Source of the DNA: Klebsormidium nitens
Lineage: Eukaryota > Plantae > Klebsormidiophyceae
Assembly: GCA_000708835.1 (NCBI GenBank)
Contig: DF237566.1
Span: 1-51,086, forward strand
Reading direction: 5' to 3'
DNA: 51,086 nucleotides
This document shows, in pieces, positions 1 through 49,700 of this stretch (positions are counted from its first letter, which is position 1; each line of letters begins with the position of its first letter). A model generated the notes under the pieces. It was not told where the DNA came from, searched no databases, and saw only the letters and a program-made list of their open reading frames with translations. The translations under genes were made by a program, and so were the position numbers.

Positions 1-577
1 CCGGAGTGTCGGACAGGACGAAGTATCAACGGCCTGGATTCGGCCTCAAAACTCGGGCCTGGATTGTTTGGGCCTGGATTGGTACTCTCCCCGAACGGCT
101 CGCTCTGAGCTGAGTCATCACCATAACTCTTGAGTCTCGAGTCGGGCGGAGTCACGTTCAGACTTCGCCCCCCGTGGGCATCGGCAGTCCGGAGTCCGGA
201 CGTCATCCGGCCATGACGGTAGGTAGCCTTACTAGCAGGCTAGGTACGTGCCTTTGTGAGCTCCAATAGGTACATCCGTAGGTATTGCAAACGCGTATGT
301 GTGTATACATGTATAGTAGAAGATAGTCTTCGAAATTCTGGTAACGCTAGATAATCCCGACCGACTGGCGTTACGAACTCGCGGATTTGCAAAGTGTAAC
401 GCAGTCCGCCTTACCGGTTTACCATTACAGACTGAATTCTGGCGACACATTTTAACTTCCCCAGTCCGCCTTACAAAGCTCCAGGGAGTATCCAAATCGC
501 CAGCAATCCCCCTAGCTGGGTACATGGCATACGCCAGTGCACGCTTCTGTGCGGGCTCGAAATCGCGCTTTTGTACT

Positions 578-688
578 CTAAAAACTGAGGAATGCTCTTG
601 CAACCAATCAGACCGGCAGGCCCTCCAATATAGAGGCTTGGGGGGTCACCGACGGCCGGATCTCAATGTTCTGCGCCCAAATTCACCG
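578..688 (+). repeat. Inverted repeat X, left copy
   Basis: ctaaaaactgaggaatgctcttgcaaccaatcaga...aattcaccg is the reverse complement of 8774-8908, with 4 substitutions and one 24-bp indel by hand alignment. Confidence 0.93.
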
Positions 689-1332
689 GGATGCGGCTAC
701 GGGGTGCAGGTGAGACGTCATATACGGCCGCGGTTAAGAAGCACTGGAACCGGTTGCCGGTCAGCGCGGTCTGAGCCTGTCGCCGGTGTCGCCGCGGTCT
801 GGGACCGTGACGTCAGCGGAGACTGGCAGTGCGACGCGCGCATTAAATGCGAGCGGTGACTGCGGGGACCGGCAGTGATTGTCAGTAGTGCAGTGAACAG
901 TGGATCACTGGACTGCAGTCACTGCAGTACTGCACTACTACAGTAAGTAGTGTTTTCCGGAAGGCCGACCTGGTGGACCTTATTGGAACTGGCTGCTGCG
1001 CGTGGTGCGGAATAGGAAGAGAGGAGTGGTGATTGAGACGTATTGTTAGGCTGAAATGTGAGGATCATGAGCAAAGAAGTTATTGTGGTGTAGGAGATTA
1101 AAGTGGCCGCTTAGGAGACCCGTTGTGGTACGGTCTGAACCTGCGGCGTTAGCGAGGTAACGGTCTGCAAGGATGGTAGAGCCAGGATTAGCGGTTGTGC
1201 CAGCTGGCGAGGTTGGACAAGGGCTGCCGGTTGGTGTGGCTGTGGAAGAAGAGAAGAGGTGAGTTAATGTGCATAATGTGTATTGCACGAATTCGGGGTG
1301 GGTTGGGTGGGTCGAAAATTTCCAATTTTCTC

Positions 1333-1664
1333 GTCTCCTTGGAGCGCCCCTTCTGGCGCCTCCCCTTTTGCGCAATCAACTTGAACAAGACGCGGTTTGA
1401 ACAACGTCTCTTCAAGACGTCAAACTAGCTTGTCCGACGCGGACAGCGCATGGTTCAAGGTTTTAACTTAATCGACAGCGCGGCCGGCCGGCGGCCGCGC
1501 CTACTGGCGGCGTGCGACCTGCCAGCTTCTACCGGTTTGTATAGTCCTCGTGCGCCTGCCGTATCTAAGAAATTAGCATTTCCCGAGCCTAAACCCTGTG
1601 GAAGGCTCGGTCTTTTTAAACCGCAGAATCTTACATCTGACGGCAGGCGAACATTCCCCTGCCT
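1333..1664 (-). repeat. Inverted repeat Y, left arm (332 bp)
   Basis: Reverse complement of 2143-2474 with about 4 mismatches. The ORF track shows the same peptides on opposite strands (1450..1743+ vs 2010..2357-). Confidence 0.97.
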
Positions 1665-2142
1665 ACTTAGTGCACTGTACTGTACTTTGTGCAAGTTGGC
1701 CACGTGCCCAACCAAGAAGCGCGGAAATAGGTGTTTGCGTTAGCGGTGTGAATTTGCGTGACAAAGGGGTGTTATGTGGCTCACTGCACTGCGAGTGGCT
1801 TACGGTATAACATTTTCTGTTTGTGACCAAGGTGTGAAAGTCATTGCATGCGGCGGTGTCTTGGTTTGATGGAAGGATTATCGCGACTGGCTGGTGCGTA
1901 TTACCACCTCAGCTAATCATTTGCCTGCTTATTAATGACCTGCCCCACGTGTACATGCCGAAACTGGATTTCGCGTGGAGTTGGGGTACAATTTCTCAAG
2001 AAGTGCGGTTTAACGAATTGGGTTTCGCTTGACCAGCCACCAACTGCAGCTTGCAGAGCATGTGATTTTCGCCGTCCATATCCGAAATCTGACGGTTTTT
2101 GAGCGTTGTGCCGTGCGACCCACAAAGCTCTCCGACTTTTTC

Positions 2143-2474
2143 AGGCAGGGGAATGTTTGCCTGCCGTCAGATGTAAGATTCTGCGGTTTAAAAAGACCGA
2201 GCCTTCCACAGGGTTTAGGCTCGGGGAATGCTAATTTCTTAGATACGGCAGGCGCACGAGGACTATACAAACCGGTAGAAGCTGGCAGGTCGCACTCCGC
2301 CAGTAGGCGCGGCCGCCGGCCGGCCGCGCTGTCGATTAAGTTAAAACCCTGAACCATGCGCTGTCCGCGTCGGACAAGCTAGTTTGACGTCTTGAAGAGA
2401 CGTTGTTCAAACCGCGTCTTGTTCAAGTTGATTGCGCAAAAGGGGAGGCGCCAGAAGGGGCGCTCCAAGGAGAC
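2143..2474 (+). repeat. Inverted repeat Y, right arm (332 bp), about 90 bp upstream of the gag ATG
   Basis: Reverse complement of 1333-1664; the arms are separated by a 478-bp spacer. Confidence 0.97.
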
Positions 2475-2565
2475 CTTTGTTTTATTGGGGGATTCACACC
2501 ATATAAGAGCCCCCTTGTGGTGATCAGTGGGAATAGGCCCTGAGTGCAAATAGCCTGTACCCGCC

Positions 2566-4115
2566 ATGGAGCCGCAATTAGGAACCCTTATCGAATTGCT
2601 AGGGCCACCAGGACTGATTGGGGAGTACTTGTGGCATGAATTGCCAGGGCCTGCACCAGGTACGGGTAGAAGATTCTGGACCAGAGTTGTGGACGTTGAA
2701 GCGGCAACAGGCAAGTTTTGGCTGGAAGATGGAAATGGCGAATTGTTTCATAGATCGGTGGACAAATCCGAGCTCAGGATCGGAATCGGCTCCAGGTATC
2801 CCGGGGACACGCTGCTTCTAAGGCTCAGGGAGAAAGGCTTGCAGCATGACGTCTTCCAGGTGGCCATTCCCGGGGCCCCTCCTTCTGAACCATTGGGTCC
2901 GGTAGGGCCAGCAGGTGGTGCTCAGCAGCAACAGGGGCAGGCCACACAGCAGCAGCCAATCAGGAGAGTAACGATCCCTGACCCACCAGCTGTGACGCCA
3001 GGGGCTGCAGTGCTTAATGCTCTCACCCCCGGTCTTATGAGGGAGGCAGACACGACGGGATCAGCAGCGCGACTGGAGAGGGCATTCAAAGAGTTTGTGC
3101 AGAAAGGGTCACTGATCTCGCATATGGAGGCAGCTCTGCGGAAGATCCCCAGGGATTCTCGGGCGTGGTATACGAAGTTTGAGCAGCTCTTCGAGGTATA
3201 CAAAGAGCCAGACCCGAAAGCGGCCCACCTAATGGCAGCGGTCTACTTCTACGCCAACCAAATCAACTTCGTGTCTAGGGCCTCGACCTCGAATACTTGG
3301 CGGATGGGTTCATCACTGATATGAAGATGGCGCTGGAGGAAGCAGGGGACAGCAGCAGTTGGACGGCGGACACGGTGCGAGACCTCGAAAATCAGATAAA
3401 GAAGTCTTTCGAGGAGTACCGCAAGGAGGCGCAGACCTAGCTGGGGGAAGGTAACGCACGCCCCTTAGTGCTGCGGGGCGCAGGAAGCGGAGGCGGCAGC
3501 TTTGGGAGGTAAGGCGGCTTGGATAAGTTAGCTTTTGCATCTCAGTGATATGATCGTGGCGCGGAAGCCACGAAAATGAACGTTGTATGGCCTGGACTGG
3601 ACTCTAGCTGTTGCGCCCTAGGAAAGGTGGCCAGTCGAGTGCATAATTCAGTCAGATCACATGCACTTTATCAGAAGCCTCGATGGGTATTGAAGAGCAA
3701 GATGACGAGGCCTGCAACAGATGCGAGTGGAACTTCAGACGCTTAAAAGCGGAGCGAATTGCCATGCAAAGAAAAGGAATCCGAGCCCAAAGTGAGGCTG
3801 GCAGCAAGATCCAAAAACGCCCGCAAATGGGCTTGAAACTTTTGATGCCACCAGATTGTTCGCCGATAATGGGCGACCAAGAAGAACGCGGGGAGCCAAA
3901 ATAAACAAACAAAGTTCGGCTCAGATGCCATTGACAAAAGTGAAGCCCTGAAGCGGCCTTATTAACAAAAACCTCCTCCAAATAACTGGAGCGGATCCGG
4001 AGGCTCCGGCAGAGGGTCCGGCTGGGGCGGCAAGAGAAGATTCGACGACAGAGACAGAGACGACAGAGAGGACCACGAGCGCAACGCTCCGGTGAATAGG
4101 TCTGGTCGTAGGTAA
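2566..4115 (+). pseudogene. Decayed gag-like ORF1 of the YR retrotransposon
   Basis: The 252-aa ORF continues after a frameshift near 3280 (LDLEYLADGFITDMKMALEE...). Further frame-broken pieces at 3683-4115 end in a G/R/D-rich tail (GSGGSGRGSGWGGKRRFDDRDRDD) after an in-frame TAA at 3963. Called gag by its position upstream of pol. Confidence 0.6.
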
Positions 4116-4812
4116 GAACTCGGCAGCCGAGAAGACAGAGGAAACCTAATGAGACCGAAGTTGGATCAGACAGGAGGTAGAGGAGAACAGCAAAACAGTC
4201 CAGCGATAATTGTAAAAACATCAGATTGACGGACCTGGTCCAAACGAATTCTGTCGACGGCTCCTTACACTTAAGAGTGCAGCGCGCGTCGGCTTCGCTC
4301 TCGAGTCCGCCGCTTGCGTGAGGTGCTGCTCTGTAAAGCACACGAATGGAAATGTAGGATACCGCATGAATGTGTGCGTGGCAGTGTTTCCAGAAAATTG
4401 CCTGCTCCGCGAACGACCGAGGCGTAATTACAATAGGATGTTTGCTCTGGCTGACTACGTGGATCCGCAGCATGCTCCGCGGACTTCTCGCCGGCTCTGG
4501 CTAACCGGCGACGCGAAATTTTGGTACCCGCGAAACTCGGTGTAAATGCGCCCGTCGAACCCGGTTACCCGTCGGTTAACGTTTCGTTGGGCGATGCAGA
4601 TTGCTAACCCGGTACCGAAGTAAAACGTTTACACCATTAGAAGATGCCCCATTCCAGGGCGGAAAGGAAGAGACCCCGTGCGGGCGGTGCAGTCTCGGGG
4701 GTTAGGTTTCTGAAATTTGGGTTAGCGAAACCGGACCCATTCCAACGTCAAGACGGCTTGCAGTCATTTTGTTCAGGCTTTCCTCCTGTTTTCTAGACCG
4801 CCGCTGCGGCTC

Positions 4813-7453
4813 ATGCAAACTGAACTTTACAACGATATCGCCAGGGCCACGGAGCAAGGATTCACGGCCGCCGAACCGGCGCAAACCCTGCCACGTGGCT
4901 CGGAGGAAAAAGCAGAAGCGGTTGCGCGACGAAGTGGCGAACTGCCGGCTCGAAACGGAGCGGCCCCGAAGGGCGACAACACGACGCTCCCCCAAAGCGA
5001 GCAGGGCGGAGCAAAAGTCGGCAGCCCTGGAAAGAAACCTGAGGGGCCCCCAGACGCCTTCGAGCGTGACCAAAACGTGACGCAGGCAGAAACCCGAGCG
5101 GGTTGCCCGAAGCGCCGCATAGCGCCGCGGAGCTGGCGGGTAGCGGGCCCGACGAAGAGCTCGAGGAGCTGCAGCCAGACATAGCCACAGATCCGCTTTC
5201 AGATGGCGTGTCCGTGGCGCTCGACGCCTGCACACACGCTTTCTTTGCCGGGATAAAGGTCAGGCAGGCCCCTATCCCCGATCCAGAGCAACTTCGGAAA
5301 GCTGTGCGAGAAGTTCTGCGCACAGCACCAGGACCGGCGGGGGGATCAGAAATGTCCGCCGAAATGAAAGGGGAGTTGGAAACCTGGGTGAGGAACGTCG
5401 GGGACCACACGTCCGACCCGGAGAAGTTTGTGGCCGGCAGCTTTGGGCGGCACTTCCCGGCCTGGCAGAAGTTGCTGAAAGACTCCAAACGGGAGTCCTC
5501 GAAACGGGTCCTTAAGATGCTCGCTGCGGGGATAAAACCTCAGTTTGTGGGCACCGAAGACGCGGAGCCCAAGAAACGCGAGCAAGTTAGGGCGATGCTC
5601 GCCCGCACCGTCAAACCCCTCGAAGTGGACGAACTTGCTTCACGGACAAGTTCCCCATCAGGTCGAATTCCGGAACCACCAGTCCTTTTACGACAACGCC
5701 CCGTTCGCAGTGGGGGAAGCAGTCAAGATGGTCCAAAACGGTACCCTGCACGTGTACGGCCCGGGAGACGGCAAGCCTAAGGTGGTCAACCCACTCGGAG
5801 TGGTTAACCTCCCCAAGGGGCGGCTGGTGGTAAACGCCCGCTACGTCAACCTGTTTTTTAAGAAGCACGCTTTCAAGTACGAGACGCTGCGCGAGGTCCT
5901 CACGTTTCTGACGCAGGCCTCCTTCTTCACGACCTGGGACTTCAAGGCCGGGTACTACCACGTCTTGATTAACCCGGCCTACCGCAAGTACTTCGGGATC
6001 AAGATCGGAGAAGTCTACATGCACTACAACGCGATGTGCTTCGGGTGGTCGGAGGCTTGCTTCCTCTACACTCTCCTCACCCAGGAGCTGAGTAAGGAGA
6101 TCCGATTGCGAGCGGTGCCCGTCTCGAGCTACCTCGACGACGGGCTAACAGGGGACGTCGACTTCTATCGCTGTCTGTGGGCGACGGTCTTCATCATCAA
6201 ACTGCTGACGCTGTGCGGCGCCGTCTTCAGCATCCCCAAGTGCAACCTCTGGCCGCAACAAGAGGGGCCTTGGCTGGGGTTTCTCATTGAGACGGTAGCC
6301 CAGCGCTTCTCCGTAGCCCCTGCCAAAATGGAGAAGCTACGGACGGCGCTAAGGGGTTTGGCGGAGAGCGCTGACGTCACGCCACGAGAGCTTGCCAAGG
6401 TGGCGGGCAAAGTCATTTCCGTCAGCCCGGCAGTACTGCCGGCGTCCCTCTACAGCCGGCCGTTTTTCGCGGCAATCCAAGGGAAGCTGACGTGGGACAT
6501 GACGTCTTCCCAACACCCCAGGCAGCCAAACGGACAGCGGAGTTGTTTCTGCAGCGGCTGCCGGAATGGAACGGCAGGCGCTGGTTCCCGCGCTGCGTAA
6601 TGGCGGAGGCTGGTTTGGACGCATCAGAGACCGGCTTCGGGGGCACCATCCAGGTCCCCGGGGGCGAAAAGCTCACGGTTGTCGGAACCCTCGCGGAGGA
6701 GGAGAGGAGCATGTCCAGTACGGCCAGGGAAACGGTGGCGTTCCTACGAGTGCTGACGGAAGCCTACGAGCGAGCGGGGGAGGTGCTGCGGGGAGCGGCG
6801 GTGCTGCTAAAGGGAGACAACCAAGGGGCGGTTAGGGCAGTGAACGCAATGAACAGCCGCGCCCCTGACGTTAACGCCGCGCTCAGACAGCTGTTTGAGC
6901 TGTGCGCGGAGGGGGACTTCGACGTGGTGGCTCAGTGGAAGCCGCGCGCAGAGATGCAGGAGGAGGACGACCTCAGCAAGTTCCAGGAGAGCTCCGACTG
7001 GGGGTTGAGTGCGGAGCGGGTGCGCAGGATCCTGGGGGAGTTCGGCGTGGAGCCCGCACTGGATCTGTTCGCGTCGGACACGTGGCACGTGTCCGATCGG
7101 TTCTTCAGCCAGCACATCACCCCCGGCTGCCTCGGAGCGGACGCGTTGCGGGTCGACTGGCGGGACCTGCTTGCACCCGGAGAGATATCTTGGATTTTTC
7201 CGCCAGTACTTGACTCCTTAGCGAGGTCGTAACGGCAATCCGGCGCTTTGAAACCAGCTGCGTGGTCATAGTCCCAAAGGCGCCGGCAACCAACTGGTGG
7301 CTGACGCTGAGCGGCATCGGCAAGCGAGCAACCGTGCGAGGACCGGTGCATCTGCCACGCAGCACGGACATATGCACACCTAGTCCAAGGGTCCCCAAAG
7401 GGACGGCCAATCCGGCGCTTTACAAATTGCAGGCGTTCCTGATAACATGGTAA
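4813..7453 (+). pseudogene. Frameshifted pol: reverse transcriptase + DIRS-type RNase H + adenine-methyltransferase-like domain
   Basis: RT motifs WDFKAGYYHV, YNAMCFGWSEA, SYLDDGL. RNase H motifs DASETGFGG, ARETVA, GDNQGAV, DDLSK. MT-like motifs LDLFAS, WIFPP, VVIVPKAPATNWW. Frameshifts near 5630, 6500 and 7215; the 5' end is uncertain. Confidence 0.92.
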
Positions 7454-7571
7454 TTGACGAATCAATTGGCAGAGTAATGCGGCATTGCAACAGATCATTG
7501 CACGAGAGTTGAGGTAGCATAGTGAAAACGTGCAATAACTCCTGACAATTAACATTCTTCTGTAACGGTTC

Positions 7572-8729
7572 TTAGCGCCGGTGCCAAATTTCTTCTACGT
7601 AGACCTTGAATGCGGAATAGCTTTTCCATCGCCCTAACTCCATCAGCTGTTTCACGTTATAGTTCAGATTAACTGCCGCGTGCTGCACTGCTGACCTACG
7701 GAAACTATGCAACCTGGTCTCCCCGTCGAACAATCCTGCTTGCTGCAGCCGTCGCTGGATTCGCTTCCGTAGGGAGGCGCTTGAAATGGGCCCCGGCGAG
7801 AATCCTGTTCGCTGCCGATTTTGCGCCCTGAATAGGTAACCGTTCTCTGGGCTCGGATCACCCTGAATCTCCAAGCCCTTGATCAGCGCAGCGCGGCAGC
7901 TTCGATGAAGGTGAGCCTGACCCCCATTCCAGCCTGGGCCAGCGGAATCCGCGCACTGGGCTCTTGCCGCACAGTTTTGCTCCAACCTGGGTACGCAGCA
8001 GGAGCGGCCCCTCCTTCGATTTCGCGCGCGCTCAGCGCGCCGCACTCCTTGCCCCGAGCTAAGGACTCCCACAGGTACAACACGGCCGCCTGGTCCATTA
8101 GCAGCGTGCAGAGCTCCAGAGCGTCCATCTCCTGTTTCAGGCGGTCGGCCAGGAACGCGAGCAGCGCGTCCAACTTTGCTTCGGTGAAAACCTTGGCACG
8201 CTGGACCTTCACGCCTTCGTCGTGCAGGTACCGCTCGTAGCCGTCCCGAAACGATTTAACGGCTTCTGACTTTGCAGGGTTCTCGTGCCCAGCGTAACCC
8301 AGCAGCGTGTATGTTTTCGTCAGGTCCTTCACGACTCCCTTCACAGCGGAAGCGGAAGCCACCGTTTTCCCCGTTGACGGCAGCACCTCCTACAATTCGC
8401 ACTGTGTCGGGGCAGCCAGTCGCCCACGATGAAGGCGCCAACATCCGCAGGAGAGGCGGTCTCAATGCTAACTCCGTAAGCGTTTCGCCCGAGAAACGCT
8501 GCGAATTCTTCTGCACTGTCCGCTTGCGCGAGCTATTCGCGGCTGCAGAAACCTTCCGTTCTGCCATCTCCCCAAATTCCGTCAAGGCCCGGGCGTACAA
8601 CGCATCCGTTTCGGCCGCGCTCCAAACGGAGCCAGTGTCCCCACCACGCCCGCCCTGGATCCCGCGAACGGAACGAACGTGAGCCTGACATCGCGCCTGG
8701 AACTCCCTCCTGCAGCCAGTAAGCCCCAT
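7572..8729 (-). pseudogene. Frameshifted tyrosine recombinase
   Basis: Catalytic set R (LARGKE), HxxR (HSFRRS), W (GRWKS) and Y (FKVY). Frame changes near 8505, 8385 and 7890 join the ORFs 8256..8729, 7883..8386 and 7572..8072. Confidence 0.92.
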
Positions 8730-8773
8730 TATTTGTCAATAACTGTTGTCTGGTGACAATTGGTATTTTGGGG

Positions 8774-8908
8774 CGGTGAATTCGGGCGCAGAACGTTGAG
8801 ATCCGGCCGTCGGTGACCCCCCAAGCCTCTATATCGGAGGGTCTGCCGGTGATTGTATGCTTGCTGCTGCTTTTCTGATTGGTTGCAAGAGCATTCCTCA
8901 GTTTTTAG
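8774..8908 (-). repeat. Inverted repeat X, right copy, about 45 bp upstream of the YR start
   Basis: Reverse complement of 578-688 plus an extra 24 bp (aaagcagcagcaagcatacaatca on the minus strand). Confidence 0.93.
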
Positions 8909-8978
8909 GTACTTGTACAAGTACGGTACTTTACTGTAATTCCTACCTACCTAGATACGGTACTTGCCTACAATAACG

Positions 8979-8996
8979 TAGGGTTTTAGGGTTTTA
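8979..8996. promoter_or_regulatory. Two TTTTAGGG telomere-type units (telo-box-like) about 60 bp upstream of the SARAF ATG
   Basis: tagggttttagggtttta read directly. A regulatory role is inferred from plant telo-boxes. Confidence 0.45.
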
Positions 8997-9057
8997 TGCC
9001 ATATGGGAATTTGGAAAGCCTGTATCTACAGCTTGTGGGATTTCAATTTTCAGCACC

Positions 9058-11133
9058 ATGGCGTCCTCCTGCCGCTTGGCATGGTCCTCGGCTCTTGCTC
9101 TCTGTTTCCTCTGCCTCTGCGACGCCATTTACTCGCCATATGGGAAAGGGGTCCGGTTGGAAGATGTTCAGGCCATCACCCTCCACAGGGGGCAGAGGAC
9201 TACGTCTCGTCGGTCAGGTGCTGTCCCCCAGCTGAACTGTGTGGGTGGGCCGTGCGAGTATGAGCCTGACACGGTGCAGTGTGTGAATGTGGGCAGTGAC
9301 GGGATGGATGTGCAATGGAGGTGCGAAGCGGACTTGCCGAGCAATGTCAAGTTTGCTCGCACGCAGGTGACATGTGAGGTGAGGCTGAATTGAGGTTGCA
9401 AAAAGGCCATTTGCCTAGGCGTCACGCGTCCTCAACAGCCTGATTGGAGGATCTGTTGAGACATATATAGAAGACCCGCAATATTGCTATCATGAAAGAG
9501 TCAACATGTATGATGCTATCATTTGGAGATTGTGCTCTAGAGGCTGCGGTCTTTTGTCAACCTGCATGCGGAGGCTCTTTTGGTGGTAATAAAGTTGGGG
9601 TAGTTAATGCCGAACCGGTGGTAGGTTGCATGCAATAGAGCACGTCTTTGAAAGGAAATGGAGGGGAAGGTGGGACATCATGAGGTTGTTTGACACCTTG
9701 TCACGGCAATCATGCAGGGCTATGAGTACCCGGATGATGAGCGCGTGCTTGAAGGAAGCTGCGGTCTCGAGTACTCGCTAAAAACAGTAGGAGGTACGTG
9801 CAGGAGTGCAGAGTATCTGAGTTCATCGCTTTGAGTGCTTCATTGCAGTGCTCAAGGATTGGCACAAAAAGACTGTGCATATTCCTACCTGCTACTTCCT
9901 TCCTGTAAGAATTGTCACTGCTTCTGAGGGCAGTACCGTGTGCTCATGCTTGACTGAATTGGTTGCGTACCCGCCGTGTTCCTGGTGCAGGCGGTGGAAG
10001 CTGGTTCAGCCAAAGCCGTGGTGGGGACTACTATGGGGCAGGAAAGAGTGTAAGTTTCAGCGCCTGTTAAGCAGATAGCTTTGAAGCTGCCAGGCTTGTG
10101 CTGCTTTGCTTGCCAACATTCGTGTGACTGGGCAATTAGTCGCATAGGTCTTCTCAGTGTGCAGTTACTTAATGCCCTCCTTATATCCAATTTTGCTCCT
10201 ATTTTGTGAGGGAGTCCATACTCTTTCAGGAGCCCACAGCTCAGTGAAGCATTTGTTTTCGACAGCCCAATGTCCGCAACAGTAAACGCATGTTCTTTGG
10301 AGGTCTTTCACCTTATCTTACTCCAAGTGCTTGGCTTGCCCTCCTCGCAGCGAGTCTCAGAGCCTCCTCGCAACTCGTGGGGCGCTGGCCAGTGGATTAT
10401 CCTCCTCCTTATCATTTACATCGGGTACCATTTGGGTCGAGTCTATCAGCAAGGTATGCTCCCATATCTGGTGACTTGAGAGGCTCACTGTACAGCGGTC
10501 TTTGATCTGGGGCCGCGTGGGGCAGACCGCTAAGTTGTGTGGCTTGAATTAATGCAGCTCTTACCTGTCAAAAACCATTGCTTATGCACGCAGCCTCGAA
10601 TGTTCCCTTTCTTTCTTCGTGTTTGAGGATCGTGACTGGAGCTCCTGTTCGCACAGGCCGCTTCCGCCCTCACGACTCGTGACCTGGCCGCAGGCACCCA
10701 CCGGCCGCAAGCCCCCTCGTCACGTAGTACAGACCACCGCCCCTCTGCACCCCCACCGCCGCCGGGGGGTTTCTTTTCAGGAGGGGGTTCAGGACCTTCA
10801 GATTCATTTGGGAGTGGCTATGGGGGCGGCTTCGGCGGTGGCAAGGCTAGCACGTCTGCAAGTAGCGGGAGTTCTGCTTGGGGTGGTTGGACAAGCGCAG
10901 CGGCAGGCTACGGACTGGGTTATTTGATGGGCAACAGGAGACGGGCACCTCAGCCAACGTCGTTCTGGGGGGGGCAGCCCAGGCAGCAGCAGGCTACCAC
11001 TGGTTGGTTCAGCAGGGGCAGCAACATGAGGGGTGGCATGAACCGGGGGGCAGGTGCGTCAGGTAGCAACACGCAGGGGGCCGCAACCGAGACGAGAAAA
11101 GCAACAGGGTATGCTAGTACGAGCCGTAGGTAA
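9058..11133 (+). CDS. SARAF: Store-operated calcium entry-associated regulatory factor (SARAF/TMEM66) homologue, about 5 exons
   Basis: Signal peptide, then VQAITLHRGQRTTSRRSGAVPQLNCVGG, PDTVQCVNVG, QWRCEADLP, and VTCE|GYEYPDD..VLEGSCGLEYSL across a GT-AG intron (9378/9718). A TM exon (WIILLLIIYIGY) precedes a Gly-rich tail with AAAGYGLGYLMG. Confidence 0.9.
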
Positions 11134-15500: not shown

Positions 15501-18268
15501 TGGTACCCCACCAGGTCCACGCCGTCCTCGCCGGCAAACGCGTACGCCGCGCCCGAGGACCCGATGTTGAGCCGCCACGGCGAGCTGTCGCCCGAGTGGG
15601 TGAACGACCTGCGCGACGACAGGCGCCAGTTTCGGCTGAGAATTGGTAATATAATCCGAGCTAGCCAGACAAGATTAAAGATCGGGACATTTGTACAAAG
15701 CAGCATAGGGTATGCTGCCCTTTGCCGTAGAAGCGCATGGACATCAAAACATTCGCATTCATTTAGCAGCAGTCGTTTAGCTGGCCAGCACATCTTGCGG
15801 CTGTTCTCCTTGCCGTGGATCCAGCAAGCCAAGCTGCCGCAAACTGGTGCCAGGCACGAGCAGACTGGTGCTCCTCACCTGAAGTAGTTCTGCGAATCCT
15901 TCTCGTTGGGGAAGTAGTTGCTCCGGTCGATGGTGGTGCTGCCCCCCTGAAAGCCCAGCTCCGTGCCGGGCGCCATCCAGAAGCCGGCGCCCTGCGCGTG
16001 CTTGTCGCCCGCCGTGACGTCACCGCTCAGCGATGACGTGTCACCGCTATTGCTCCGCACCACCTTGGCAGTCGAGCTGGGAGAGGGGGTGGGCGAGGAC
16101 GTGGGGGAGTCGGTCGGAGAAGGGGCTTGGGTGTTGGACGGAGGACTGGGAGAGTCAGTGGAAGGAGGGGTCGGGTTGTTCGACGGAGGACTGGGAGAAT
16201 CCGTCGAGGAGGGGGTCGGGTTGTTAGACGGAGGACTCGGAGAATCCGTTGAGGAGGGAGTCGGGGAGCTCGGAGAAGATGAATCGGAGGGGGCCGGCGT
16301 GTTACTCGACAATGGCTGGCCCGAAGCTGCTGCACAAAGTGAAGGCAGAACATCATCAGGCAACTCGAAGACTTGTACATACTGGTAAGCAGTCCCGATG
16401 ACTAATGTCGACATTGGAGTGACCCAAAAGCACAAACTTCGTGCCTCTTCTGCCATAAGATAAGGATCAAGACAGCAGGTTTTGCGTAAGCCCAGCGTCG
16501 AATATCTGGACCAGCCTAATGAAGAAGAGACTTCAGAGACGAAAAGCACACTTGAAAGTTTCTTCGGCCTTCAAATTTGTGCAAGGCTGCCCAGCTTGAT
16601 GGGTTTCGTCTTCTTTCTTGCATGTATATAACTTGAGGAAAAAGGAGTAAAAAGGACTTGTGCTTGCGATGACCACGTCCGAACTACTGCCATCAGCCTT
16701 GCTTACTAAAACCAGCCCCTGCAGACCGGATTCTGAAATTGCATTACTTGACTAATGAGGTTGAGCATGAGCAAGTTGGTGGTAATATCAATCTGATGCC
16801 CTTGCTTCATCAAGACCTGGGCGCCGGGCCTGTGTTGCTGGATAGCTTGTGACAAGAAACAGATGTGACAGGAGCTTTCGAAAGCAAGACGCTTTTCTTT
16901 TCAAAGGAAGAAAGAGGTTTGTCACTTACACGAACCATCAGGCACCGACTGGCCGGAACAGTAGGGAAGGTCTGCTGGGCTGCTGGGGCAGCCCTCGTTG
17001 CCGCAGCACGTGTACGCAGAACCTTGGGCGTTGAAACATTGATTGGGCTGAGCACTGTTGGGGTCGCAGCCTGTAAAGAAAGATGATTCAGCTGGGGGCC
17101 TGGTTGAAGCTCACCTGATACAAAACATGACAACAGCTGCACAAGAGTGGGCAGGCCGCTCAACAAAGTTGCCAGAATCAGTGGGCGTCCCATCGGTTGC
17201 CATATCCCCCTGGGGAAAGGGGCTCTCAACAGGCAAGACACGTGCACGTACCTTGAAGTAGCTTTCGGCCAGTCAAGCTTTGAACCACCACTGGCGCTCC
17301 CAGGAGGGGGCAAACTGCAGAAGGTGAAGTGAAATCTCAGTGCTCATATGGAAAAAGCTAGTGGTGACACTTCTTGGACTATGATCACAGAGTCTAGTGA
17401 GAGCGCAGCTTGCAACACCAGCTGTGGGCCTTGATCCTGCAAAATCCTCAGGAGCTCATGCAACTGGGATCAGCTAGGTATGGGAGGATGCTATTTGACT
17501 ATTCATAATCCACTGGCAACTCAGAGGTCCGCAGGGCGCGCGTCATCAATTTTGACCGCTAAAACCAGGGTCCTCCTAAGAAAGTGACATTATCTTTACC
17601 ACATTCAATTGAGAGGAGCGGGCGCAAGTGAACAAGCACAGGAACCCTTGAACTGCTCATGTTCGTGATTTGAAATATGACAAAGTAGATGTTTGAAGCT
17701 TAAAAGCACTAGAAAGGTAGCAGTGCTCAAGATCGTCTGACAAAAGGCATGGTCTTCCACAGTGTTGGCTAAAGGCACTACCTTTCTGCAGCTGTGATTT
17801 GGATGACCTGGACTGCCCCTTTAACCTGATATGGGATCAGGGGCCACTTTCGGAGTCACGCTAGCTCAGTCTACATTTTGACTGCTGATGGAGGACTGGA
17901 CTGGAGCTCAGTCTGGAGCCTAACCTTCTAATTGCGGTGTTGTGCAAATTCTAGTGCGCCACATTTCTAAATAAGTGGGAGAATACAACCAATGTGTTGA
18001 GTACTGTCTACTAGTGTGATCACCCCCTGCGAACATTATCAAGCCAGCTCATTTCGTTGGTGCCCTATGATGCTGGTGCCAGGATGTTGGCACTCTTTTA
18101 CTGCGACAATCTACAGCGTCTAATAAAGTTTGTTGTCCAGAGCAGGATGACCCAAATGGTGGCATGAGATGCACTGCCAGCGGACCACTCACCTTGCTGA
18201 AGGAGCAGGAGGAGACTAATCACAGCTGCGTGGCTCAGAAAGCCCCTCTTCATCTCACTGGAGCCCAT
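12547..18268 (-). CDS. Secreted protein of unknown function, 9 exons, 666 aa: signal peptide, 6-Cys module, Ser/Pro/Thr linker, large C-terminal domain
   Basis: Hand-built exons 18268-18193, 17314-17252, 17070-16930, 16329-15879, 15608-15416, 14914-14735, 14368-14179, 13621-13452 and 13083-12547. All introns are GT-AG with compatible phases; the total is 2001 nt with no internal stop. N-terminus MGSSEMKRGFLSHAAVISLLLLLQQVCPLLGAPVVVQSLTGRKLLQ. Confidence 0.85.
16137..16266 (-). repeat. Coding 45-bp tandem repeat x3 (PTPSSTDSPSPPSNN)
   Basis: Units start at 16137, 16182 and 16227 (gacggaggactgggag...). They encode the Ser/Pro/Thr linker. Confidence 0.9.
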
Positions 18269-29200: not shown

Positions 29201-29879
29201 GGTTCAGACAATAATCCACCTTTTGAGGTTCCGCGAAGTATGCACTTGATCCAATTTCAACGAGAAGTTCAGGAAAGTTTAAGAATTACCCCTGGTGCAA
29301 GGCTGGTAAGGTGGTAAACTTACCTGCGTCAAACATCATCTCGTCCGCATCCTGCCCCTTCCCAAAGGCCAGTGCATAGTCCTGACCAAAAACTTTGGCC
29401 TGGTTCTCTGTTGTTAGCTCCATGCCGTAGTTGTTCTCAAACAGCGCTGCCTCGTACTCAGCCACAAACTCTTTGTAGTCTGCTTCTTCCTTGAAGCGCA
29501 AAGCCCAGACACCATTGGCAACGAAGTCCACCCTCTTCTGCTGCGGATTGGACTGCAGGTTGAGCTCATTTGACACCGCGGCCAGCACTTCCCTCTTTCC
29601 CACGGCCAAGTACCACACCCTGTCCCCGCTGCCTGCCTCCTCCTCCTCTCTCTCATCCTCCTCCTCCTCATCGGACCCCTCCCCACCTTCGAGCAAGAAC
29701 CGAGGGGTGACTGAGGGATTGACAAGCGCCCACTTCCCCGTCTGCACCCCACCAGTATGTTGGTACAACTTTGCCGTTCCTACCGGCGCCTGCTTCTCAG
29801 GCGTCACAGTGACATCCCTCTCCTCGTCATAGTCCTCCCCCTCAGGAAGGTTGTTGTCCTGGCTCTGATTTTGTCCCAT
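26244..29879 (-). CDS. VID27: VID27/CYPRO4 family protein, at least 5 exons
   Basis: MGQNQS start (possible myristoylation), acidic N-terminus, [110 protein letters not shown]. Confidence 0.92.
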
Positions 29880-31291
29880 GATGCTGAATGCGTCTGCGCA
29901 ACTCGCAAGTTGGACAACACGCTGGCCCCTTTGTGCCTGCACGACAAATGGTCCCTGCCCCTGAAACAAAACCTGCGTGAAGCACGCTGGTGTCTACCTC
30001 CTCTCGCCTCGTCGCCGTCACCCAGCCGCTCCAATCACACACCCGGGCCTTTCACAATGCCATTGCAGCCACCGCCCCTTTCAGTACCGTTGACACCCGC
30101 GTTAACATCATCCACAATCAGAAGAAGTTGCAAGCTAGAGTTGGTTGATCTCAATGCTCATGCAGTGCAAAAGGCACCCGCAGTGCGCACAAGCGAGTCC
30201 AGGTCATTCTTCAAATGTAAGCCGTCGATGATGATTTCGGCGCGACGTTGGACCGTCACGATGATCTGCATCCAGTTGGAGCATACAAATCCCCACGCAA
30301 CAGCTGGGGCTCACCGTCGCGAGCCCAGTCCGCGGACTTGCAATGCACAGCTGGCTCCGTGGTAGACGATGCCAACATGAATGTCAGAGATAATGGCGGA
30401 ACATGATCACTGTGACATTTTCAGAATACCTACATCTGCACCATTCAAATGATTGAGAGCCTTTGGTAACATTGTGTGCGCGGCGAGCGCATGCACTGGG
30501 AGGGTACTGGGACCTGACAAACAGTTCTGCTTGCGAGCCCGGCGTGCCTCAAAAGTGCGAAATCTCATACTCAAACCAGTCAAAGTACGCGTGCTTCTAG
30601 GCTCCATTTCGAAGCACCACAAATGTTATACGGGTCACTCAGATTTAATTTGGTTTCATTAGTAGCAGGCTACGACATACGTACATAAGAAATCTACAAC
30701 CAATGCATCTTTCCATAAAGACTTCAGCACGAGGGTCGAGCTGGACCTGCACCTGATACGACAGCGAGCTGGTCGGGAACATTGCATTCAAGTATTCAAT
30801 GACACAAACCGGACATCCTCGTGGGTTTGCCCTAGTCAACAACTCCCGTCCGTGCCATTACTTGCCTGGCAGAATTTTGGTCGAAGCTGCATTCCATTGC
30901 TGCACAAAGGTCGAATCCGGCAAGGGATGCAACCACAGTCTCTGCATATCGTGCATTTCAGACATCCGAGGGTTGGCGGCGAGTTGCAAGAAACTGGGTC
31001 CTTACCTCCGTATGCTCATTGGCGCTTGTGTGACGCAGGGGACGTACCACCGGAACATCATGAAGGACCGTAATCCAAACCAATATCCTGCGCAAATAGG
31101 AGCAAATTGTCAGACATGAAGCACCTCGACCCAAAAGGTCGTGCAAAAACGGCGGCTGTTCCTGCTGCCTGCAAAGCAGCCGTCCACATTGCCACTCTCG
31201 TTTCATCAAGCCTAATCACCTCTGAAAGTGGAAACGAGATGCACATCACAGTCCACAGCGCTCCCGCAATGCCGGATGCTGCACTCACCTG

Positions 31292-46509: not shown

Positions 46510-49121
46510 TTTGTACACTTATAGCTTGCACCCGGCGAGTCAAAGGGAGGTCAGTTGTGGCAACATTATCATAGATCTACGGATTTTCGAAACCATTCCC
46601 GCTAACTCACTAGCTACCAAGTGCCCGCTTTGCAACCAAACAGTCTTGACAAAGGACTATCAACTCACATTTCGAAAGAGTCACACACTGAAGGAGGCTT
46701 TGCAATCAGCTCTCCCGATTCAGTCACCAAGGGTCTGAGAAAGCGTCAGCCTCTCTGCCTTGAGTGCGTAAAGCGGCATTTTGGTCCTGTCAGTCAATGT
46801 GCTGACAAGCTCACAATCAGCGTAGCAAGGCCCAACCGGACCTCGGTGGGTTCAGCCGAGGTCTGGTTCCAGCGCAAGACACCAGAAGCCTGGGCATGGA
46901 GGCAACTGAAAGAGTTGCGGGGTGAAGAAATTCGCAACTTGCAAGTGAAGGCAGAGGAGGAACGGCCGGGCGGGCGCCGCAAGACAACTGCAGCGCAAGC
47001 AGCAGTGAACAGGGGGCGAAAAGTAGGAGAAATAGCAAGGTCCAGTGCACAAGTGGAGGTAAGCACGGGAATGGATCTTTGAACCCTAGACATGCGTCTG
47101 CTTAGTGCTATTTTATGATGCTTTTCTGCAGCCTGGATATTATATTGTGTGTTTGAACCAGGTGTGCATAACAAGAGTAACCACACAGCAATTGAAGAAT
47201 GCTGATGGATCATACTGTAGCTACATGAGCATTGTCGAGTGTTTGTCTCCCACCATTTGTGACATCATGTCTAAGTACGTTTCTTGTATGGATGCAGGGG
47301 CAACCTCACACAGGGAATGGCGAAGCGTCCGACGTAGAGGATTGCCGAACCATCGTCGACCAAGCTATGATGTATCTTGATGGCCTCGGATCAGAAGAGT
47401 GCACTCTGTACAACGTCGGCGAGCATGGATCCGCAAGTACGGTCTACCTGGCTAGTACTTGGAATCACAATTCCGCTAAGCCCAAACCTCTCGGGCGCCC
47501 TAGCAAAGTGCGCGCGTTGCTTGAGATGGTGCATCGGGACACCATGGGAAACTTGAGCTGCACCTGCGACCGGGGCCGGTTGTACTCTCAGGCGCCGTGC
47601 GTGCACAAGCTTGCGCTACAGGCGTTGGAGCTGCCAGGGCTAGCCAGCGCCAAATCGCTGCAAAAGGGGTCAAGAGTGGTGGAGATAGCATGCGACAGGA
47701 CCGGGGAGCGGGTTTTTGGGGTGTACTGGAACGCTGGTTCGCCCTCACCTCAGCGGACCATGGTCCACTATGGAGAGGGGCCGCAGATGGGCTGGTATTG
47801 TGAGGGGAGGAAGAGCGGATGCAGCAAGACGGCTGACTGTTCGCACATCCAAAGGGTGAAGCGAGCTTTGAGCGAATCGAGCGGTGTGGAAAAGCTCAGC
47901 AGGAGTTCGTTTTCAGAGGAGCAGCTCGAGCTCGCAAAAACGTCTTTGAAGGACGGTCTAGGGGATAGCCGGGGCGGTGACTGCGTGGCGCAGAGCGGGC
48001 AGTGTGCGCCAGACGCCGACGTGGACGGGTACCTTGCGGAGCTGGTCGTTGGCAGTCATGAGAGGGCCGCATGCGAAGGGCCAAGTTGCTTCTGCAAGCA
48101 GCATCCGAGGGTGTTCGGCGGCGCTGATGTGGACGAGGAACCCTGTGCAGCGAGGTGCTGCGCGTCTGCTCAAACGAACGGAAAGCGAGCTCGATCGGAG
48201 CAAGGAGAAAGCTCCAGTGGCGTTGGGGAAGCGAGCGCGAGATCGGGCAAACGGAGAACCAAATCATTTTGGACGGCAAAAGGCACAGAGATGGGGGGGT
48301 CGAACGCTGCAACGGGCAGCGTGGAGGAGGCTGATTTAGAAACAGCCGAGGAGAGGGGGCGGGGAACGGAGAGCGCCCCCCAGGTCGATGATCGGAACGC
48401 GTTCTCGATTCCGGTGTGTAGCCTCTGCGTGTGCCCCTCGAACGTGTGCACGCATGGTGCCTCACGCGGTGCTGCGACGGTGTTGCCCATGGAAGCTGAG
48501 GGCGTGCAGCTGGAAGTGCCCAAGCTCGTTCGGCCGACGGACTCCTGGCAGGTCCACGACCCCGAGGTGTCGCTGCTGCGAAGGCCCGTTCGAGTCAGCG
48601 AGCTCACGGCCCGGGATTTCGAGGAGCTGAGCACTGCGGAGAGTCTCTCCGCCCCGTGCCCTCGAGCACCACCTCCTTGCCGCACCAGATGGTTGGGATT
48701 GTGGCAGAGTGCCCACGTATACGACTTGTATTGGTCGCAAGAGGTAAAGATCGGACCATCGCGCATTGCTCCATTGCCTGCGTCTTTCTTGCTCGAAGAG
48801 CTGATGCATGATTTGGTAGAATCGACACGAAGAATACTCCATTAATGAGTGCAGACGGTTCGTATAAATAGCCGCGCAATGTTTCAGGCTAAGCTTCGAA
48901 GCTTCAACCTGATTCTACTAGCCTGAAGCCTGGATTGAATCAAAGCTCTCAGTCAGCGATGGGCACCATTATGACTCTACTCTTGTGCAGGTCAAGCTCC
49001 GGATCTATTGCTGCGCGTGCCCCGAGAAGCATACTGTTCATTTCAATGGAGAGGCGTTCGGACTGTACGCATGGACGCGAGGGTTGATCGTCACACAAGC
49101 CGCGTGTCAAATGCTGCTACG

Positions 49122-49165
49122 NNNNNNNNNNNNNNNNNNNNNNNNNNNNNNNNNNNNNNNNNNNN
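49122..49165. other. Assembly gap (44 N) with a false 60-bp duplication
   Basis: 49062-49121 is repeated exactly from 49166. Merging the two copies restores the reading frame. Confidence 0.95.
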
Positions 49166-49507: not shown

Positions 49508-49700
49508 TTGCTAACGTCATCGAGTGTGGGCCCATCTCAGGGTGGGCCCGTCTTGGCGTGTCCAAGTGTCCACGATCTGGCACCAGCTTTTGCCGGTCGC
49601 TTATTGCTGACGTCATCACAGCACGAGCCGGTCTCGGCGTGTCCAAATGTGCAAGCTCTGGCGCCAACTTTTTGCGGTCGTGCGTTGCTGACGTTATTAG
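49508..49700. repeat. Degenerate 80-95 bp tandem repeat (about 2.2 units) in a transposase intron
   Basis: Units begin ttgct(a/g)acgt(c/t)at at about 49508, 49604 and 49685, and share tc(t)ggcgtgtccaa..tctggc.cca.cttt. Confidence 0.7.

Follow-up and report, generated by a model that had tools for sequence, protein, structure and literature searches.

Each described layout of the tyrosine-recombinase (YR) retrotransposons keeps either an internal complementary region (ICR) or an internal B1A2 repeat junction (PMC3266345, PMC4157794). Elements of the PAT group carry repeats in the order A1..B1A2..B2 and may have an inverted YR (PMC3266345), and inverted YRs are found in kangaroo and in a PAT element of Daphnia (PMC4157794). 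According to Szitenberg et al. (PMC4157794), a form transitional between the split-direct-repeat architecture of PAT and the inverted-repeat architecture of DIRS1 has not been observed. Here we describe an element at positions 578–8908 of contig DF237566.1 of the streptophyte alga Klebsormidium nitens, in which gag, pol, and an antisense YR gene lie within nested inverted repeats. The window that we analyzed is the entire 51,086-bp scaffold. With a probability of roughly 0.55, we read the locus as a single decayed copy of a PAT/kangaroo-like YR retrotransposon whose two modules lie head to head rather than in tandem. We take the nested inverted repeats to be a probable scar of rearrangement rather than a design or a new end structure, and the element is a dead, rearranged new addition to an already known element type.

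The nested repeats reported in the first-pass annotation as the inverted pairs X/X' and Y/Y', enclosing gag, reverse transcriptase (RT)/RNase H, and an antisense YR, are real, as a repeat finder and self-BLAST agree. Read in the sense of gag, the Y block is here called A and the X block B, and each copy was delimited by repeat finder, self-BLAST, and alignment. Block A is present as copy A1 (Y', 2143–2474, plus strand), which forms the 5' end of a large unit, and as copy A2 (Y, 1333–1664, minus strand), which is inverted relative to gag. These two inverted arms of 332 nt differ by 4 mismatches and are separated by a spacer of 478 nt. Block B is present as copy B1 (X', 8774–8908, plus strand, with the end at 8908 or 8912), the 3' end of the large unit, and as copy B2 (X, 578–688, minus strand, with the start at 573 or 578), again inverted relative to gag. 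A gapped alignment of X and X' over about 111 aligned nucleotides has 4 mismatches and a single-nucleotide indel close to the tip; X also lacks 24 nt that are present in X'. We considered an age difference between the X and Y pairs, but 4/111 versus 4/332 mismatches is not a clear difference.

The alignments revealed no homology extending past the A and B blocks. What the large unit (2143–8908) and the small unit (578–1664) have in common is limited to block A (332 nt) and block B (about 135 nt); their interiors (6299 nt and 645 nt, respectively) and their flanks are unrelated. Self-BLAST found no further copy of X or Y within the window. We also searched 1–9500 on both strands for a third terminus copy, a DIRS1-type ICR, or an internal B-A junction, using as queries the first and last 60 nt of each block and the joined sequence of the B end and the A start. 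None was found, and the best matches were no better than those of shuffled queries. Because neither an ICR nor a B1A2 junction is present, the locus is incomplete as a self-sufficient architecture. The blocks themselves gave little in other searches. A 78-amino acid open reading frame (ORF) from block A had a single weak match (E 9e-05) among 1.84 billion representative proteins, to five short stretches of a 692-amino acid protein, and this search led to no further copy of A. A search of metagenome contigs for exact matches to a 28-nt core of X was negative, and Rfam and tRNA scans of 1–9500 were empty.

The gene order that had been claimed, gag and pol on the plus strand followed by YR on the minus strand, was borne out by ORFs, Pfam, and tblastn. 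Y' lies just upstream of gag, as had been noted, with 91 nt between its end and the gag ATG. This interval (2475–2565, plus strand) is promoter-like at the level of motifs, with ATTGG at 2484–2488 and TATAAG at 2502–2507. The gag-like ORF (2566–3324, plus strand, 252 amino acids) has no Pfam match and no CCHC zinc knuckle, and it is followed at 3325–5100 by an A/G-rich, frame-broken coding remnant. The pol gene (5106–7444, plus strand), identified by Pfam, tblastn, and its reading frames, comprises RT, RNase H, and a C-terminal DLFAS...FPP domain. The RT has an RVT_1 match (3.6e-07), and its ORF shares 95% identity with the NCBI protein 'Reverse transcriptase [Klebsormidium nitens]'. This conserved domain follows RNase H, where DIRS1 and PAT elements, in contrast to Ngaro and VIPER, carry a methyltransferase-like (MT) domain, and Pfam and PDB sequence searches give it no name. 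The YR body (7575–8729, minus strand, stop at 7572–7574) has an in-frame ATG at 8729 and is read as exon 2 from an acceptor (tgcag/G) at 8707. Its catalytic residues are readable as R...HSFRR...GRW...Y (Arg, His-x-x-Arg, Trp, Tyr), and its relatives carry PF00589. The pol and YR genes are convergent, with about 130 nt between them. No other integrase-like ORF was found in 578–8908, which leaves RT/RNase H with a YR and no DDE integrase, as in the order DIRS.

This copy is decayed, a feature that the first-pass annotation had not seen. Tblastn with K. nitens and JGI RT proteins mapped pol in four frame pieces, with frameshifts near 5630, 6500, and 7210, and YR is likewise in four frame pieces, with frameshifts near 8510, 8388, and 7890. 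We conclude that the copy is dead because of these six frame breaks in pol and YR, three in each gene. It was probably intact on arrival, and the six breaks fit the 1–4% divergence of the repeat pairs. The public annotation of the scaffold presents the broken pol as an intact 560-amino acid 'reverse transcriptase' (P0001, 5352–7229, plus strand), with introns placed over the frameshifts near 5630 and 6450.

Relatives of the element are found in K. nitens and on JGI and ENA contigs. RT identity to K. nitens RT models ranged from 57% to 82%. The C-terminal YR region that was searched is 67–69% identical to K. nitens integrase models and 90% identical to its best match, from an ENA assembly, and only a few proteins were found at an identity of at least 80%. 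RT and YR alignments against metagenome, viral, and prokaryote-genome contigs gave no relatives. The nearest relative in the same genome is KFL_008500020 (P0041), with an RT that is 82% identical. Residues 408–519 of P0041, its C-terminus, are translated from the antisense of a recombinase gene and match 8031–8387 of the window on the plus strand. Since the P0041 model runs on into YR antisense, the gene order is convergent in that copy too. The same model leaves out most of the RT core, which makes it a chimeric model built across a second decayed copy.

The element can be compared with several described families. It shares with kangaroo of Volvox carteri (PAT group) a green-lineage host, a gag without a zinc knuckle, RT/RNase H with a further C-terminal domain, and a recombinase on the opposite strand (PMC4157794). 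However, kangaroo has internal repeats between MT and YR, whereas here the end of pol (7444) and the end of YR (7575) are about 130 nt apart without a repeat, and the repeats of the K. nitens copy are inverted rather than direct. The split direct repeats of the PAT group as a whole (PAT, Toc, kangaroo), A1...B1A2...B2, were not found; A and B each occur twice, but inverted. The 'novel' PAT element of Daphnia pulex (Szitenberg et al. 2014, PMC4157794) has an inverted YR and internal repeats that lie beyond YR and before the 3' terminal repeat, which is the layout that we propose below for the ancestor of the algal element. The proposed ancestor would differ from it in a 645-nt module with the YR promoter and exon 1 between A2 and B2. 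Inverted terminal repeats (ITRs; here X and X') and the presence of YR and RT in one element recall DIRS1-like elements, although we read the ITRs here as an accident of rearrangement. DIRS1-like elements require two ICRs mirroring the termini and a YR co-oriented with pol (PMC3266345), neither of which was found. Unlike in Ngaro, YR is antisense and direct repeats are absent. Other K. nitens YR retrotransposons, represented by proteins named 'putative Phage_integrase' and 'reverse transcriptase', resemble the present copy in having an antisense YR and a YR gene that apparently has two exons.

The interior of the small unit, which we call u (689–1332, plus strand), suggests how the two units are related. 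This 645-nt stretch resembles nothing else in the window, the element interior included. We read it as the 5' module of the YR gene, with a leader, an exon 1, and the start of an intron. The candidate exon 1 (1173–1258, plus strand) begins with an ATG and has 28 codons plus 2 nt, followed at 1259 by the donor GTGAGT (AG/GTGAGT). The perfect donor octamer AGGTGAGT occurs once on the plus strand of the 51-kb window. Exon 1 ends in phase 2, and its last two bases together with the first G after tgcag at 8707 form an Arg codon. Past that acceptor (..ctggctgcag/G) the frame reads R-E-F-Q-A-R-C, which is the YR frame, and the joined product would read ..R-R-E-F-Q... We note that this joining was judged only by reading phase and the single split-codon residue. 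The CCAAT and TATA-like stretch that had been noted in X were confirmed, with CCAAT at 604–608 and CCAATATAG at 625–633 facing rightwards into u. CCAAT and ATATAG are found in both X arms, and on the reverse strand of X' they point toward the YR gene. Judging by these sequence features, u appears to be the part of the recombinase gene nearest its promoter, and X, with its CCAAT and TATA-like motifs, the promoter itself.

Related proteins are consistent with a splice site at this position. Four proteins from JGI and ENA contigs (P0062, P0064, P0066, and P0069) are seemingly unspliced ORF calls that read upstream of a conserved FQ. Where TGC AGG of the K. nitens copy crosses the tgcag acceptor, three of the four have C-R and the remaining one has W-R, so that the position of the acceptor, as far as these proteins indicate, looks kept in four related lineages. 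In the annotated K. nitens models P0067, P0071, and P0073, the stretch before FQ is replaced by a short N-terminal peptide that is similar among the three. The exon-1 peptide is more similar to the N-termini of the annotated K. nitens YR models than are over 98% of composition-preserving shuffles (31 of 2000 did as well), which is modest support. Because the interior of the small unit holds a candidate YR exon 1 and donor, the two units look like the A-I-B and A-u-B modules of a split-direct-repeat element, where I is the interior of the large unit.

The DNA between and around the units bears on how they came together. The two A copies are separated by the spacer (1665–2142), 478 nt of unique, non-coding sequence that matches neither the element nor anything else in the window. 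Its ORFs have no Pfam match, and we take it to be host DNA. A perfect 16-nt palindrome, GTACTTGTACAAGTAC, which is GTAC-rich and belongs to the host flank, abuts the right end of the element at 8909–8924. GTAC also abuts the left end (573–576). GTAC-rich motifs are found in the left flank and at the start of the spacer (1665–1700), the latter with an 8-nt palindrome, AGTGCACT, at 1669–1676. GTAC-rich palindromic DNA at the insertion points may mark a target preference.

We propose that the ancestor was an ordinary split-direct-repeat element. From left to right, it would have consisted of A1, gag, pol, the antisense YR body, B1 joined directly to A2, u with the antisense YR exon 1 and promoter, and B2. 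The ancestral YR mRNA would have started at the promoter in B2, and a small exon in u would have been spliced to the YR body across an intron holding the internal B1A2 junction. The observed arrangement would then consist of one module with A, gag, pol, antisense YR, and B (2143–8908) and one with A, u, and B (reading from 1664 down to 578), placed head to head, with 478 nt of host DNA between them. Such an orientation would turn the direct repeats into nested inverted repeats and remove the internal junction. The cause was probably either a recombinase-type inversion at the internal B-A junction or two separate integrations. Along the first route, a normal integration would have been followed by an inversion between the internal junction, which would be a complete recombination site left inside each integrated copy, and a site 478 nt upstream of A1. 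Along the second, A-I-B and A-u-B would be two separate adjacent insertions or derivatives. We favor the first route because its inversion step takes place within one molecule, at a complete site kept by every integrated copy, whereas the second route needs a low-copy family to have hit the same 500 nt twice.

Several points weigh against this interpretation. Only the orientation of the 478-nt spacer would distinguish the two routes, and the microhomologies at the junctions, which use the same four half-sites in either case, do not discriminate between them. The tandem layout A-I-B-A-u-B is one that we infer for the family rather than observe. That the A and B arms end at the same base follows from the way in which repeats are delimited and is not independent proof of site-specific breakage. 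The argument for exon 1 comes from one locus, and 1173–1258 did not stand out when the window was searched by tblastn with the annotated short YR N-termini. Finally, X' lies just upstream of the antisense YR, as had been described, with 45 nt between it and the in-frame ATG at 8729. Since the YR body thus has its own ATG behind the promoter-like X', the gene could do without exon 1 and be driven by X', as the first-pass annotation had suggested.

The readings offered in that annotation differ from ours in what they make of the small unit and of the ends. One of them divides the locus into an autonomous unit, Y'..X', with dissimilar ends and a head-to-head, 1.1-kb non-autonomous partner, Y..X; taken literally, this partner would be a relative that was inserted independently, with target preference accounting for the placement. 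The division into two units with common end blocks and different interiors stands, as does the fit of their block structure, and the GTAC motifs and 16-nt palindrome at the insertion points could mark a preferred target. Recombination between the two A copies of a full element could also yield an A-u-B derivative. But the small unit is not an unrelated partner, as its interior looks like the first exon of the YR gene itself, with a donor. Furthermore, a low-copy family would need a strong hotspot to insert twice independently within 478 nt, and a unit with unlike ends and without an internal junction has no known route to regenerate its termini by reverse transcription (models in PMC3266345). 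We therefore regard a literal autonomous and non-autonomous pair as possible, though clearly the lesser reading. The other proposal, a single 8.3-kb element of new terminal architecture with X as ITRs, Y as an additional internal inverted repeat, and an inward-facing right ITR that drives the antisense YR, agrees with the inverted, terminal, and promoter-like character of X and X' and with the in-frame ATG at 8729 just behind X'; nor would a target-site duplication (TSD) be expected for YR integration. It is not supported, given that there is no ICR or internal terminus copy and that the candidate YR exon 1 and its donor lie on the strand opposite to the YR body, 7.4 kb away. In addition, a genomic RNA starting from X would hold a 332-nt perfect hairpin, this copy is dead, and a second copy with such an order is not known. 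We consider a single element of this kind improbable. About equally doubtful is that the nested inverted order is the working layout of a small Klebsormidium family, transitional between the PAT and DIRS1 architectures, or that A-u-B moves alone as a recombinase-mobilized DNA circle.

Two further explanations appear very unlikely. The Y-spacer-Y' stretch (1333–2474) has long, 99%-identical arms around a short spacer, as is typical of foldback elements, and could in principle be an unrelated transposon of foldback or MITE type inserted in the leader of an X-bounded DIRS-like element. No TSD flanks 1333 and 2474, and we rejected a foldback insertion on that ground. There is also no other copy in the window, the protein search with the block-A ORF returned just its one weak match, and the element that remained would still be without an ICR. 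Misassembly is a comparably slim prospect. If the true locus were a normal tandem split-repeat element, its repeats, at 135–332 nt, would be difficult for short-read assembly and might have been misjoined, and only 577 nt separate the start of the scaffold from the element. However, 1–21131 contains no N gaps, and a wrong path through direct repeats yields another direct order rather than an inversion. The junctions between Y and the spacer and between the spacer and Y' would have to be invented. Compared with each of these explanations, a rearranged copy of a PAT/kangaroo-like element remains our preferred reading.

The remainder of the window contains other features that we note here. The right end of the element lies 150 nt upstream of the ATG of a host gene of the SARAF family, whose first exon (9058–9393, plus strand) has a signal-peptide-like start and matches PF06682 (E 1.5e-33). 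An ORF at 15875–16549 on the minus strand contains a Pro/Ser/Thr-rich tandem repeat of 45 nt (15 amino acids; ..PSPPSNNPTPSSTDS..), with the array at 16095–16265; it has no Pfam match and is probably a secreted, wall-type protein. A second minus-strand ORF, at 29286–29969, carries a DUF7135 domain (PF23581, E 5.4e-35). The longest ORF of the window (47232–48845, plus strand, 537 amino acids) has no Pfam match and adjoins an N gap at 49122–49165 and an 81-nt tandem repeat at 49546–49694.

Were the nested inverted order the architecture of a family, it would be truly surprising; judged by the evidence, the locus is a broken copy of an already known type of element. The locus can nevertheless be viewed as a natural experiment of modest value, in which the two modules diverge precisely at the ends of the A and B blocks. 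Should the recombinase have made the break, its cut site can be read from the four junctions, with ..TTTTT-AG on one side and AG-GCAGG.. on the other, as can the target that it accepts, GTAC-rich, palindromic DNA. The locus is also a candidate case of a two-exon recombinase gene with an intron that spans the internal junction of the element, and as a fossil of recombination at that junction it is of some value. More broadly, the locus would illustrate that the complete junction site in each integrated split-repeat element can cause later inversions beside host genes.

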